NCBI RefSeq assembly: GCF_003918875.1
Contig: NW_025767524.1
Coordinates: forward strand, 2,294,001-2,358,000
DNA: 64,000 bases
Direction: 5' to 3'
Source: Haliotis rubra
Taxonomy: Eukaryota
Shown here piece by piece: positions 1-6,189 of this stretch (position 1 is its first letter; each line of letters starts with the position of its first letter). A program made the position numbers and the translations under genes. The notes beneath the pieces are model-generated. The model was not told the DNA's origin and did not search any database. It saw nothing but the letters and a program-made list of their open reading frames with translations.

Positions 1-740
1 AGCGAAAATTCAGTTAGATCAGTCGTCTGCTGGTGACAGGCAATATATAAATAGGAAGCCACGTGATCACAACACTCCCTCGCAGTGCGGAGCAAAAAGT
101 ATGGCTCATCGTCGAAAACCCATACAAAATACCCGCATGATACGAGCGGCAACAGTTTCGCCGATACGATGCCATCAACACTATTTTTTAGGGAACACTT
201 GATATTTTTTGGTGAAATAGATGAATATATCCTTTATCACTCAAGGTTAGTAAAGTACAAACTTTTAATGATATTACAGATAAAAAATACGTTTTTGTCT
301 TACATCGTCGAAAACCCCTGACACCGGGATATAAGTGTATAATATTTCTTTTACAATTTTCACTGAAAATTAATGACATAGATATTCAGATTTAGTTTTG
401 CAAGGAAAATATATGCAAAATTGTGTTCTTAATGAAAGATCTTTTCCTGAACGTGATATAAATTTCCATTTTGTCCAAAAACTTCTTTTTTTTCAAGCTG
501 AGGAGGTCATCACTATGATCATATAAAACCATTTCGTGCGGCAATTGATAGTTTGTGAATAATTAGAAAAATGTTCCAATATAGCCCAGTCGGCTTATAG
601 CAATATCCCCAACCTGTTACTAACTAACCTACAGTTACAGTAACAGTGTTAGTGTCATGTTTTACAATTGCTAATGCGATAATCAAGACAGAAACGGATG
701 TTCTTAAGAGTCCGAAAACCTATAACACGATGATACTTAC

Positions 741-777
741 CTGCATGGACTGCAACGAACGATTTCCGTTTGTCCAT
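741..777 (-). CDS. TASP1: First coding exon of a taspase-1/asparaginase-2 family protein; gene continues off the left edge
   Basis: Minus strand reads MDKRKSFVAVHA-G followed by a GTAAGT donor. This matches the N-terminal FVxVHAGAG motif of taspase-1. An ETS site (CCGGAAGT, ~861) lies upstream. Only 12 codons are visible. Confidence 0.6.
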
Positions 778-2403
778 TACAAATTTCCTATTTGAATCAG
801 TCGTAAAACACGAGACTGTGATAATGTACACATAATCCTTTCATATTTTCCGCCATGGACCCGGAAGTCTGAACATCAACTTCGCTTAAGTCTAATACAA
901 AGATGTAAAGAGTCTGTTCATATGCACCAATATCTGGCACAAAATTTTATTATTTATTTATAGGAGTAATATTACACGACAGAGTTGGTCAAAAGTACTT
1001 CATATGTGCATGCAATCTGTTCCATTTTTTTCTTTTGCTGTAAGCGAGGTGAAAGGTGAACTCGACCCGAGGACACATGTTTGGTACTGGTTGGAGAGAT
1101 ATCCGACCGTTGAACTGGTATGGAAGCAGTAGTAGTACATTCACTCAATGTGACTCTGTTACATATACTTTTCGTGTCCTTGTGACAACCTCCCCCCGTT
1201 TGTAAAAGCTCTTACTACTGTTCAAAGGCATGAATGATGAAATTACACTGATGACTGATGTACAAGGTCCAGGGTAGGCTGTTGATGGTTGTGACCTACT
1301 GGGCAAGGTATACATGTCAAACTAGCAGAAAAAAAAAAACGAAGGGAAAAATATCCGCCCGTAACCTCCCCTCGAACGCATACTAAAAATTATTCCTGCC
1401 TGTTAAACTGCTGAAATATTCAACATGGCAGTACGTGTTCGTCAGGAAGAACTATATACCTTCCTTTCGCTGTCAGTTATAAAATATCAGACAACTGATT
1501 TTTCTTGAGCGTTATGTCCCCTGTAGTCCGTTTTACAGAAAATTGAAAGCTGTCTACAATGGGGGTGAACCACATTATTTTCCCTACAGCCTAGCCTTCC
1601 CTGTAGTGCTAAAGCCCTAAACGAAGCAAGTCTAGATTTCCCCAGGTTCAGTTCTGAATCTCTGGTCTCCCTAGGGCTCCTTTTCAATTTAAATGGGCTT
1701 GTTTGTTACTAATAAAATTCTATATATTCAGAGACTAAGCCTTAGTCTAACTTCGTACATATCAAGCGCTGTTCTCTCAGGAGCGAAACTTTGTAAGTTT
1801 TGGGTGTCCAGAAAGGGCCGTTTCCAAATCGTTCCCACCAACAGCTGTCGTAAATGAACATGGGAAATCGTCATCATCTTCTCAACTCAACTCAACTCTC
1901 ATACTGTCGTATGAGCTCCATATTCGATTGCGTTAGAATACAAAGTGAATACTCGGCGATGCAGTGAAAGCGCTCGAAATCAGGCGATCTGGAACAACAC
2001 CACAAACCGGTTTCGGTTTCGGCTTGCGAAAAGTGGACTCGTACTGGGTACGTTTCTGCACATTTACTTTGGCTAGGGTACATTTCTGTATACAGAAAGG
2101 TACCTGGGGTACATTTCTGTAGTACCTGTGCCGACAACGACCCCTTCAGCAAAAATATAGGCCTATGGTTTTTATAAAAAGCCTAAACCCTCGAAATAAT
2201 CCTAATATTAATAAGTAGAATACATTTCAAGTGGGGGTTATGGGCGGAACTCTTACCGAACAAAGAGCTTTAAAGTTCATATGTACAGGGTTAAATGTGA
2301 TTCTTCTCAATGACTTTAATGTAATGTATGTTTAACTTATTGATCATGTTTCAGAGTTTGGAACCAATGACACTTATCGGCAGACCTGTTCAGTGAGCTT
2401 GCA

Positions 2404-2652
2404 ATGCCTCGCCACAGCAAGCTGCAGCTTCAAATACTTAGTCTTTACCGTCAGTTTCTCAGGGAGGCAAAAGATAAACCAGGGCTCCGATCATATGTTC
2501 AGGAACAGTTCAAGAAAAGTGCTCAAATGCAAAAGACTGACATCATTCAAATAGAATATGCAATCAGGAAAGCCCAAAAGCAGCTTGACATGTTAAAGTC
2601 CACGTCAGTCTCTGGTGTGGGTGTGTTTGAAAAGGAAGAAGAAAAGCCTTGA
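2404..2652 (+). CDS. SDHAF1: Succinate dehydrogenase assembly factor 1 (LYR-motif protein)
   Basis: MPRHSKLQLQILSLYRQFLR...KPG...EQFKK...KTDIIQIEYAIRKAQKQL has the LYR motif and aligns by eye with SDHAF1 (MSRHSRLQRQVLSLYR...IEYLYRRGRRQL). Splice acceptor tgtttcag ends at 2354. Confidence 0.9.
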   Translation: MPRHSKLQLQILSLYRQFLREAKDKPGLRSYVQEQFKKSAQMQKTDIIQIEYAIRKAQKQLDMLKSTSVSGVGVFEKEEEKP

Positions 2653-2757
2653 AAGAAGAAGAAGTTTAAATATCTAAATTATTTTGAAGACAGAATTATT
2701 TTAGTTACAGATAACATTGCTTTTGAGACTTGTTTTGCCAGTCTAATCTGCAGCACA

Positions 2758-3819
2758 ATGTTTTTAAAACTCAAAATGGGACTTATGTCCCAATTCGTAG
2801 TGAAACGGATGTGCTCATCTTTGGTAGAGAAGAGTCTTGTGTCATCACTTTATCAGAGAGTTCTCTCCACTTTTCCTGATGGTATCCAGATGGCGCTAGC
2901 TTATGGCTCAGGTGTTTATCAACAAGAAGGACATGTAGATATGTCTAAGAACATGTTAGATTTCATCTTCGTTGTGGATAATCCCTTGCCATGGCATAGG
3001 CAGAATATAAGAATGAATCCAAAGCATTATTCCTTTCTCAAATTCTTTGGACCAAAACATGTCACAAGAGTACAGGATAAATTTAGTGCTGGTATTTATT
3101 TCAATACTCTTGTTCCATTTGAAGAAAGAGTGATCAAATATGGTGTAATCAGCACTGATCGTCTGGTAACTGATCTCCTTGACTGGGATACACTCTATGT
3201 CAGTGGACGTCTCCACAAACCTGTCAAGCTTCTCATTCTACCCAAAAAATGCAAGTCTTCTTTCAGCGATGCAAATTAATCTTCAGAGTGCCGTTCATGC
3301 AGCACTTCTCATGCTCCCAGAATTCTTCTCAGAGGAAGACCTTTATGTTGCCATAACTGGACTGTCCTATAACGGAGATTTTCGTATGACCGTTGGAGAG
3401 GACAAGAAGAAAATAACGAACATAGTGAAACCAAACATTGAGTATTTTCGTAGGTTGTACGAGACTATACTTGACAATGAAGAACATATCTACTGGCATA
3501 AATCTAAAGGCAATTTTGAACAATACCCAAATTACATCTCCCAGTACCACCATCTTAGCTTGCTCCCCCGAAGAATGTTCAGACTCACCTTGTAGAAATG
3601 AGGTCACATGGAGGTAGCTCACCAGACCTAGAGGAGGTGTTGAGGGTCTTTGCCCATGACAGAAACTGTGATGAGCATGTAGCTAAGATCATTGCCAATA
3701 TTGTGTGGTGGTCAAGTGTGTTTCAGAGTGTCAAGAGTGTGTTTACAGCTGGAGTCATGAAATCGTTCCGTTATAGTGGCAAGAAATTGAGGAAAATGTT
3801 CAAGAGTCAGTCAAAATAA
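2758..3819 (+). CDS. TAMM41: Mitochondrial phosphatidate cytidylyltransferase Tam41, intronless, ~350 aa, with two apparent homopolymer frameshifts
   Basis: Motifs AYGSGVYQQ, MLDFIFVVD, IYFNTLV, IKYGVIS, DLLDWDTLYVSGRLHKP, LSYNGDFRM and GEDKKKITNIV. The three ORF pieces join at an A6 run (3244-3249) and a C5 run (3565-3569). AATAAA at ~3998. Confidence 0.93.
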
Positions 3820-5544
3820 CACTGTTTGAAGATGACTGTATACATGTACATGTAGTTACCAATGTTAATGAACAAATGCTATCATTATTTACTGAATGTT
3901 TCTCTGCAAACATAAAAATGAGGTACTCTAGGTAATGTAGTATTTGGTGCATGCCGATACTTCTGTGCCGTGATACAGAGAACTCTTCATTAAGTGAAAT
4001 AAAATATGTACCACACTTAAAAAAATATGTATGCATTGGATCATCTAATTACGCTTGACTTATTGGAACCCCAAACAACTGTTGGCATGGTTTGTTATGT
4101 CATTTATTCAAATTCAGCTTTTGATTATTTAATATGGCACATCTGTTAATGCTGTAAAGACACATTTGAAATGACAAAACTATTTCAACATATTCAGAGT
4201 GGTTGTGGAGATAATAAACTGGGCTTGTCTACATTGTTCCATGATGTTTAACTATCCTTTCTTCTCCATGCAAAAAGCTGAAAATATTATTGTATTATCA
4301 TCATGATCAGTGTGGCACACTTGGATGCGTCATGTCCATTTACCATTTTGAGGATGCTAGAAAATCCTTAGTGTATGGTAGTCTTAATTTTGCTCAAAAA
4401 CTGTTCCTGATGAATGATTCCTACAGTTCAGCATGAGTGTGAGAAAGATTAAGAGACATGGACTACCTCCATCTTGATGCATTTGTATTGTTAAAGTTAG
4501 CTGTGGATTTGATATGAATAAAGTATAAAAACAATTATTTATTGTTGTTTTTTTAATATTATTTTGATCATTGATCTTTGTTGACTTGTCCAGGAAAAGA
4601 AGGAGGCAAAAACGGGATGCTCGAAATAATACTGGAATATGCCTTACAGATTATTGTTAGGATTGTCAACCTCGCGTGTTGCATGACCAAACATCCCAAT
4701 TCACATCAGTATCTACAGATGAAGAGAATTTACTTCATGAAATACACCATCAACTTTATATATAGTCCTTTTCAACATTCATGCCTCGGTTTGAAACACA
4801 TCCACACAAAACACCTTCAGAAAATGAAGAAAATCTAATAATTTGTGTTGCCTTTGGCATGGCAAGACACCACAAAATGAATATGAATAATATGACAGTC
4901 TAAATCAGTTGTTGGGATATATTTCTGTGATAGGTGAAATATGATATTTGGATATATCATGTAGTTCTGATTAACAATTAACATAAAATTAATATACAAC
5001 CCAAATATGTCTATTTTGCATGCCTTTAAATTTCCAAAGCAGTGGAAATGAACTGCAAGGAAAGGGAAGTAATCCATGCTATATTATCTCCCCTGAAAAA
5101 GGGACACAACTCCAGTTGACTCATGAAAATCTCCTTCACAATGCTGCCCAAGACATCACTCAGGTGTTGCAAATACTGATGAATGAACCAGTAGCGTCTG
5201 AACTTTGACAAAACAGGTAAACATGGAACTGTTGTCAGACTTCACACTGTGAAATTAACTGAGGTCCATTATGAGTTGGAAAGGTTTTTCTTGTGTTTGA
5301 TATTGTCAGTAAAAACAAGAGTTTGTGAAAGTTCTTCTTTAAAAACACCTATCACACACCAGCTGAGATCGAATAAAGATCAGTCTTATGCAATGAGTGA
5401 TAGTTGTTTTTATGAAACTGGATTATAGATATCAATTAATATGCTCTTAATAAACTGTCAAAGATCCCCCACTTGTGTGGTCTTGCCATGTGGTTATTTT
5501 ATACTTTTATAGGTAAATAGTTGGAGACACACTCATCTTTAACC

Positions 5545-5991
5545 ATGGCATCAAGAAGAATGTCTGGAAAAATCGCCATGTGGCAAAAACGCACGGATGA
5601 ACACCAGGAGAAACAGATGATCAACCCTTTTTCAGAATGGGAAGGTGCATCTCACCGAGCAACCCTCAGTAAAGATGATGAGAACTACGGTATACCCGTC
5701 GCAGGGTCATCGACAGAGAGGAGAGGTCGAAAGGCTGGAATGTTGATCAGCGGAGAGGTAGTGGAACTGTGTCATGTGATTGCCGACATTGGCTGCAGAC
5801 AAGATGATGGAACATATGTAATTACTTTTGGACATTTATTTGAAGCTTACACGAGAATCTCCAATAAGCTTGTGGGCATGTTATTGCGTGCTCGTAAACA
5901 ACATCTGGTTCAGTTTGAAGGTGAGATGCTGTTTCAAAGGCGGGATGATGATGTGCTGATTACTTTGTTGAGGATTCCAGATGAAAACTGA
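5545..5991 (+). CDS. ABRA: Actin-binding Rho-activating protein-like (STARS/Costars domain)
   Basis: QMINPFS, YGIPVAGSSTERRG and ITFGHLFEAYTRISNKLVGMLLRARKQHLVQFEGEMLFQRRDDDVLITLL are typical of the ABRA C-terminus. accATGg context; acceptor at ~5512; probable non-coding exon donor at ~5216. Confidence 0.88.
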   Translation: MASRRMSGKIAMWQKRTDEHQEKQMINPFSEWEGASHRATLSKDDENYGIPVAGSSTERRGRKAGMLISGEVVELCHVIADIGCRQDDGTYVITFGHLFEAYTRISNKLVGMLLRARKQHLVQFEGEMLFQRRDDDVLITLLRIPDEN

Positions 5992-6189
5992 GACATTTGG
6001 TGTGTTTTGCACGTGGCCCTGATTGCTTAGAATAACTTGACATTTGGTGACGATAACTTGAAGTGTTAACACCCCAAATGTTTCTTTGTTTTTCAGCCCC
6101 AAGCCGGTTTAATGTCACAAAAGTGATAAATATCTGACCTGCAAAGCTCCAGTCTTTCCTCCTAAATTAACCTGACAAGCTGTGTTAAG

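Follow-up and report, generated by a model that had tools for sequence, protein, structure and literature searches.

In the stretch of the Haliotis rubra genome analysed here (contig NW_025767524.1, positions 2,294,001 to 2,358,000; 64,000 nt, hereafter the window), the gene for the LYR-motif protein SDHAF1 was directly followed by an intronless gene for TAMM41. We consider it likely that the two genes form a genuine transcription unit, kept across Lophotrochozoa, with TAMM41 as the downstream, retro-derived cistron. The unit has one promoter region, one intron in the 5' untranslated region (UTR) and both open reading frames (ORFs) on one terminal exon (Table 1). According to the model proposed here, a short non-coding exon 1 would be transcribed from a promoter that the unit has in common with an Asparaginase_2 (ASRGL1-like) gene in head-to-head orientation. 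This exon would be spliced to one long terminal exon containing, in this order, an upstream ORF (uORF), SDHAF1, ~100 nt of spacer with no poly(A) signal, TAMM41 and the 3' UTR, and TAMM41 would be translated from the resulting dicistronic mRNA.

The arrangement had been proposed in a first-pass annotation made from the letters alone, and its description of the upstream part (the acceptor, the 9-codon uORF, SDHAF1, and a 105-nt spacer without ATG or AATAAA) was confirmed in the sequence. Contigs of four public runs (X1, X9, X16 and X6) were aligned to positions 1-6000 of the window and their depth read in 200-nt bins. X9 and X16 are RNA-like contigs of two related (sister) abalone species, from runs that were guessed to be RNA. 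The X9 contig (1393 nt) placed 1337 letters on 2354-3693 in one piece and carried 56 letters beyond 2354 on the upstream side. Its depth was 2.62 in bin 1001-1200, which equals 9.35 x 56/200, and 0 in bin 801-1000, indicating that the 56 extra letters of exon 1 fall inside 1001-1200. In X16, a contig of 590 nt was aligned over 2354-2911 with 38 further letters, and overlapped a second contig (1339 nt) lying on 2884-4159. Neither X9 nor X16 covered the intron or the intergenic DNA at 4600-5500. In both species the contigs ran unbroken from the exon junction into TAMM41, passing through SDHAF1 and the spacer. These contigs show that spliced RNA includes the spacer. The placing of both genes on one exon behind one acceptor was supported, and spliced RNA-like contigs span them in two related abalones.

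The alignments of X9 and X16 both begin at 2354 and not at 2355, which fits an exon ending in G (CTG/GT). Together with the depth arithmetic, this makes 1117 the probable end of exon 1 and 1118-2354 the probable intron. The donor CTG/GTATGG at 1117/1118 was kept in H. asinina by sequence comparison, and a donor at 1200/1201 is a weaker alternative for the end of exon 1. The transcription start site would lie upstream of the 3' part of exon 1, within about 850-1062. At the other end, the first AATAAA was found at 3998 as previously described. However, a transcript end at ~4003 did not hold, because RNA-like contigs reached 4159, 4170 and 4505, past this first signal.

SDHAF1 matched Pfam PF05347 (Complex1_LYR) over residues 10-63 with 41.7 bits (cut-off 24.8, E 1.1e-10), and its N-terminal L-Y-R tripeptide lies within LSLYRQFLR (residues 12-20). 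In the Atlas clusters, those named SDHAF1 (succinate dehydrogenase assembly factor 1) scored 0.93 vs 0.84 for LYRM4. Furthermore, the JGI protein P0003, which is 56% identical to the SDHAF1 of the window, carries the SDHAF1 name. Judged by these cluster scores and the named homologue, with no tree, the LYR protein appears closer to SDHAF1 than to LYRM4, LYRM7 and others. Both SDHAF1 and TAMM41 are single copy in the 1.38-Gb genome, and both ORFs are under strong purifying selection in the Haliotis comparison; for SDHAF1, the ratio of nonsynonymous to synonymous substitution rates (dN/dS) was 0.05-0.12 against two other Haliotis. Exact-sequence look-ups of SDHAF1 and of two TAMM41 pieces (2758-3276 and 3598-3816) gave no match, a blank that carries little weight.

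The first-pass annotation had asked for the adjacency to be checked in other groups, and the tandem was found in molluscs, an annelid and a brachiopod. We took as a tandem any SDHAF1 that is followed directly, and in the same orientation, by a TAMM41 without introns; seven loci with spacers of -4 to 174 nt were of this kind. It was present in H. asinina (L016, spacer 87 nt), in another Haliotis (L005, spacer 101 nt and out of frame, TAMM41 of 352 aa), in a more distant species (L006, 74 nt), in the annelid Owenia fusiformis (36 nt) and in the brachiopod Lingula anatina (174 nt). In the oyster Crassostrea virginica, the SDHAF1 stop and the TAMM41 start overlap as ATGA, so any SDHAF1 mRNA there must run into the TAMM41 start. 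Gene models that merge the LYR and Tam41 domains were met in Pomacea canaliculata, Potamilus streckersoni and P0100 (ENA), and they look like the work of gene predictors bridging two adjacent ORFs. SDHAF1 was not among the called genes of H. asinina (L016), Lingula (L011) and Owenia (L012), despite an intact conserved ORF in each. Two further loci carried an SDHAF1 of 51-56% identity: in L007 no TAMM41 was found within 680 nt after SDHAF1, and in L008 the contig ends 250 nt past it.

Outside the lophotrochozoans the picture was different. In Priapulus, Branchiostoma and Lytechinus, TAMM41 has about 8 exons with similar break points over 3.5-22 kb, whereas Haliotis, Crassostrea, Lingula and Owenia have the gene in one exon. 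No SDHAF1 was found within 8-10 kb upstream of TAMM41 in these three outgroups, and a TAMM41 downstream of SDHAF1 occurred only in the sampled lophotrochozoans, that is, at a new location. The comparison gives good support to the reading that TAMM41 would be an ancient retrocopy which landed in the SDHAF1 3' UTR and replaced its parent. The simplest history would be that TAMM41 was retroposed once, on the lophotrochozoan stem, and that the parent was lost afterwards. A landing of TAMM41 in the SDHAF1 3' UTR had been suggested before from the abalone sequence; this part fits the outgroup comparison, but the event appears to be as old as the lophotrochozoan stem and not a local novelty. After so old an event, one would not expect a poly(A) remnant or target-site duplications to be left. 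With the intron-bearing parent lost, the downstream cistron would now be the only TAMM41.

The coding sequence of TAMM41 needed closer inspection. Its start and stop were as first annotated; however, the frame was not open as written, being broken at an A6 and a C5 run. The match to Pfam PF09139 (Tam41_Mmp37) spanned 2-322 of the 322 positions in the profile, split over three frame pieces, while the match in relatives was in one piece, e.g. in L005 and H. asinina (352 aa). Compared with the Haliotis contig L005, the window has one surplus letter in the CCC-A6 run at 3244-3249 and two in the C5 run at 3565-3569. X1 is a DNA contig with the same species label, of depth 142 and with 1 mismatch over 2.3 kb. 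Its clean bins had a depth of exactly 142, falling to 141.3 in bin 3201-3400 (142 x 199/200, one letter missing) and to 140.6 in bin 3401-3600 (142 x 198/200, two letters missing). The depth of X9 fell from 9.35 to 9.30 and 9.25 over the two break bins, X16 gave the same pattern, and the short pieces of X6 had 1 gap in 3188-3384 and 2 gaps in 3394-3636. One letter in the first bin and two in the second were therefore absent from X1, X9, X16 and X6 alike. Without the three surplus letters, TAMM41 was open over 352 codons with no stops, 343 of the 352 residues were identical to the H. asinina protein, and dN/dS was 0.05 (vs H. asinina) and 0.065 (vs L005).

The published H. rubra assembly (1,378,265,264 bases in 2,854 scaffolds) was built with about 30x Nanopore reads using wtdbg/DBG2OLC, then run through Racon twice and Pilon once (PMC6774278). 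Because the contigs lack the surplus letters, the repaired frame is open and dN/dS is about 0.05, the two breaks are best read as homopolymer errors of a Nanopore-based assembly in an intact gene that purifying selection maintains. We also rejected programmed ribosomal frameshifting at these sites, since the sister-species and same-species contigs are simply without the surplus letters. We had also considered that the 10 gap letters of X1 were one 10-nt indel in the UTR, in which case the frameshifts would have been real, and this was overturned by the per-bin depth, which puts 1 + 2 of them at the break sites. X1 lacks 7 further letters outside the coding region, at approximately 3801-4200, and the RNA-like contig of X6 lacks 10 letters in 3966-4170. 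These 3' UTR gaps are further assembly errors or indel alleles.

How would the second cistron be translated? Between the start codons of SDHAF1 and TAMM41 there were 1-6 ATGs in every species, which makes leaky scanning unlikely; as the sole route it was rejected for the window, where four ATGs lie between the starts. The likeliest route would be re-initiation after ribosomes have finished the SDHAF1 ORF of 80-90 codons, or the uORF and short internal ORFs. Both the oyster's ATGA overlap and the short spacers of the other loci are in keeping with re-initiation. The uORF was found at the same position in H. asinina, L005 (12 codons) and L006 without conservation of its peptide sequence, and Lingula has a similar one of 9 codons at -39 relative to the SDHAF1 AUG (-37 in L006). 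It thus ends 7-9 nt before the SDHAF1 start, at nearly the same position, in Haliotis, L006 and Lingula, with unrelated peptides; its recurring position may be regulatory or may be chance. Ribosomes coming from the uORF would be poorly placed for the SDHAF1 start and, as a speculation, could re-initiate further down. In its strongest form, the proposal would be that SDHAF1-TAMM41 has been an obligate dicistronic mRNA since the lophotrochozoan ancestor, that the TAMM41 retrocopy, having replaced its parent, is made only as the downstream cistron by re-initiation, and that ribosomes are shared between the two proteins through the positionally conserved uORF, whose end lies 7-9 nt ahead of the SDHAF1 AUG. 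We put this form forward tentatively, as somewhat doubtful.

Several other explanations could account for parts of these data. The two genes might be the products of two overlapping transcripts, with a start region for TAMM41 inside the SDHAF1 exon or the spacer and the linkage kept for regulation only. Contigs cannot tell overlapping transcripts apart, the 3' half of the spacer (about 2700-2757) was conserved in three Haliotis while its 5' half was variable, and in some gastropods the TAMM41 model has its own long N-terminal extension. However, the spacers are only -4 to 174 nt long in a fixed orientation in three phyla, no AATAAA or ATTAAA was found in the spacer at 2653-2757, and a fresh retrocopy has no promoter of its own, so we regard this explanation as unlikely. 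The same short spacers and the lack of a poly(A) signal between the ORFs agree with the remark in the first-pass annotation that there is little room for a separate promoter. The latter had also raised a shared promoter with alternative acceptors, and in its present form exon 1 would be joined either to 2355, giving SDHAF1, or to about 2741, giving a monocistronic TAMM41, and the dicistronic RNA would serve mainly SDHAF1. Of the three acceptors named (2710, 2740 and 2753), only the AG at 2740-2741 was kept in three Haliotis, as was the stretch of 55 nt ahead of the TAMM41 AUG; the other two AGs (2710 and 2753) were not conserved among them. L006 and Lingula also have pyrimidine-rich tracts ending in AG near the TAMM41 AUG, and FlyBase lists the TAMM41 orthologue of Drosophila, CG33331, as sharing a promoter and 5' UTR with its neighbour. 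On the other hand, the X9 and X16 contigs cross both the exon 1 junction and the region 2711-2754 with no break or branch at the candidate internal acceptors, and no junction from exon 1 to an internal acceptor was among the joints listed. Furthermore, the ORF overlap in the oyster would force the acceptor into the SDHAF1 coding sequence. Alternative splicing thus has little in its favour and is, in our view, rather improbable.

Two more explanations concern the proteins themselves. In the window, the spacer keeps the frame of both ORFs and is stop-free after the SDHAF1 TGA, which is not so in H. asinina or L005 and is probably a chance feature of this sequence. Together with the LYR+Tam41 models in three records, it would suit an SDHAF1-TAMM41 fusion protein made by stop-codon read-through or in-frame splicing. 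Against such a fusion, the H. asinina spacer has an in-frame TAG, that of L005 is 101 nt and out of frame, the oyster ORFs overlap out of frame, and the merged models look like predictor artefacts; it is extremely unlikely. Genuine frameshifts, with TAMM41 a pseudogene of recent origin or a loss-of-function allele in this abalone, are also very unlikely. The window as written does have two frame breaks and the genome has no second TAMM41. However, the 142x contigs with the same species label are without the three surplus letters, both breaks lie in homopolymer runs, and there is no other damage to a gene with a dN/dS of 0.05; on the read-derived contigs and this ratio we rejected a TAMM41 pseudogene.

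The two-gene transcription unit therefore remains our preferred explanation, and a number of points have to be set against it. The RNA nature of the runs is a guess, argued from the splice-like break at 2354. The contigs are not single molecules, and overlapping transcripts could look alike. The position of exon 1 is a matter of depth arithmetic and not of a read junction. The conserved 55 nt in front of the TAMM41 AUG might just as well serve as an acceptor, as an internal start region or as a translation element, and in animals ribosomes usually re-initiate inefficiently once they have translated an ORF of ~82 codons. In addition, TAMM41 models from Babylonia, Littorina, Elysia, Biomphalaria and Aplysia (P0013, P0027, P0079, P0084 and P0103) have an N-terminal extension of 80-110 aa with no LYR match, and the unit may have been rebuilt in caenogastropods and heterobranchs. 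Alternatively, these extensions may be over-long ORF calls.

Elements of this arrangement are known from other systems. For example, AltMIEF1 (L0R8F8) is a small LYR-motif ORF upstream of MIEF1 in mammals. As would be the case in the abalone, a small LYR mitochondrial protein is the 5' cistron and the second ORF encodes another mitochondrial protein. However, AltMIEF1 lies as an alternative ORF within the 5' UTR of a gene with several exons, whereas the abalone has its canonical and only SDHAF1 gene as the upstream cistron, followed by a whole gene that would be retro-derived. Retrogenes in host transcription units are likewise intronless copies in the transcribed region of another gene, expressed from the host promoter. 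The abalone TAMM41 resembles them in being an intronless copy in such a region, but differs from the general class in that it would have replaced its parent across a superphylum and been a downstream cistron since the mollusc-annelid-brachiopod ancestor. In green algae, polycistronic nuclear genes use leaky scanning, and their upstream ORFs are poor in AUGs (PMC7896298, PMC11291117). There, as would hold in the abalone, two conserved ORFs lie on one capped mRNA with the short one first; the abalone unit differs in its 1-6 AUGs between the starts, which favours re-initiation. CG33331, the Drosophila orthologue of TAMM41, and its neighbour CG33332 are on the FlyBase list of rule-benders as "shared promoter" genes (PMC4528330, supplementary file 9). 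In the abalone as in Drosophila, TAMM41 would be in a transcription unit shared with a neighbouring gene. However, the partner in Drosophila is not SDHAF1, TAMM41 is upstream, and the two share a 5' UTR with alternative splicing and are not a pair of ORFs on one exon.

Table 1. Features of the SDHAF1-TAMM41 unit in the window (CDS, coding sequence)
Feature	Position	Strand	Basis or remark
Exon 1 (non-coding), probable 3' part	1062..1117	+	donor GT 1118-1119; placed by depth arithmetic
5' UTR intron (probable donor side)	1118..2354	+	RNA-like contig alignments stop exactly at 2354
Splice acceptor ...tttcag, pyrimidine-rich	ends 2354	+	sequence reading
uORF, ATG...TGA, 9 codons	2367-2396	+	ends 7 nt ahead of SDHAF1 AUG
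SDHAF1 CDS, intact, 82 aa, LYR-motif protein	2404..2652	+	PF05347 match
Intercistronic spacer, 105 nt	2653..2757	+	no ATG
TAMM41 (Tam41/Mmp37) CDS, intronless	2758..3819	+	start 2758, stop ends 3819; true ORF 352 aa
TAMM41 piece 1	frame 1, 2758-3279	+	Tam41 profile positions 2-131
TAMM41 piece 2	frame 2, to 3595	+	Tam41 profile positions 132-249
TAMM41 piece 3	frame 1, 3559-3819	+	Tam41 profile positions 246-322
3' UTR	3820..4540	+	AATAAA at 3998 (first), 4213, 4517

The surroundings of the unit were also compared. The Asparaginase_2 (ASRGL1-like) gene lies on the minus strand at 739-1062, with its coding sequence starting at about 779, head-to-head with the SDHAF1-TAMM41 unit. A conserved CCGGAAGT was seen at 861-868 between the two. 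Asparaginase_2 was found head-to-head upstream in the window, H. asinina, Lingula and Owenia. The same divergent neighbour in the latter three indicates that the bidirectional promoter arrangement is also ancient. The interior of the intron (1245-2150) is a high-copy repeat of ~900 nt, in which the DNA-contig depth of X1 rose to 1e5 to 2e6 (bins 1401-1800 and 2001-2200). This repeat is not in the orthologous intron of H. asinina, whose locus aligns to 669-1244 and 2151-4840 of the window with a gap of only ~120 nt between the blocks. Downstream of TAMM41, Costars and/or COX16 were found in the window, the oyster and H. asinina. In the window, an intact ORF of 156 aa at 5521-5991 (+) has a C-terminal Costars (ABRACL-like) domain, which was recognised by eye. 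In the oyster locus (L010), the Costars gene comes after TAMM41 with COX16 beyond it, as in H. asinina.

Full-text literature searches that paired the two genes, or either of them with the notion of a two-cistron mRNA, returned no description of the pair, and others gave only general papers on polycistronic genes. Conserved dicistronic genes of animals and retrocopies that use a host transcription unit are both known kinds; what is notable in SDHAF1-TAMM41 is the age, the replacement of the parent gene and the value for phylogenetics. Whether a genome has the tandem or not offers a simple rare genomic character for spiralian phylogeny, and it could help to test which disputed phyla belong to Lophotrochozoa. 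The locus also has practical consequences: annotation pipelines systematically mishandle the upstream cistron, leaving SDHAF1 uncalled or fused to TAMM41, and the H. rubra assembly needs re-polishing at TAMM41. If our explanation is right, the pair would be a natural and very old dicistronic nuclear mRNA in animals, and it would show that a promoterless retrocopy can survive, replace its parent and stay functional. Oyster, abalone and Owenia would then serve as a system for re-initiation after a fairly long upstream ORF. SDHAF1 is known as a complex II assembly factor that matures SDHB, and Tam41 as the cytidine diphosphate diacylglycerol (CDP-DAG) synthase for cardiolipin. One promoter and one mRNA would govern the supply of SDHAF1 and of the CDP-DAG synthase, and the assembly of complex II and the first committed step of mitochondrial cardiolipin synthesis would thus be tied together in a whole superphylum.

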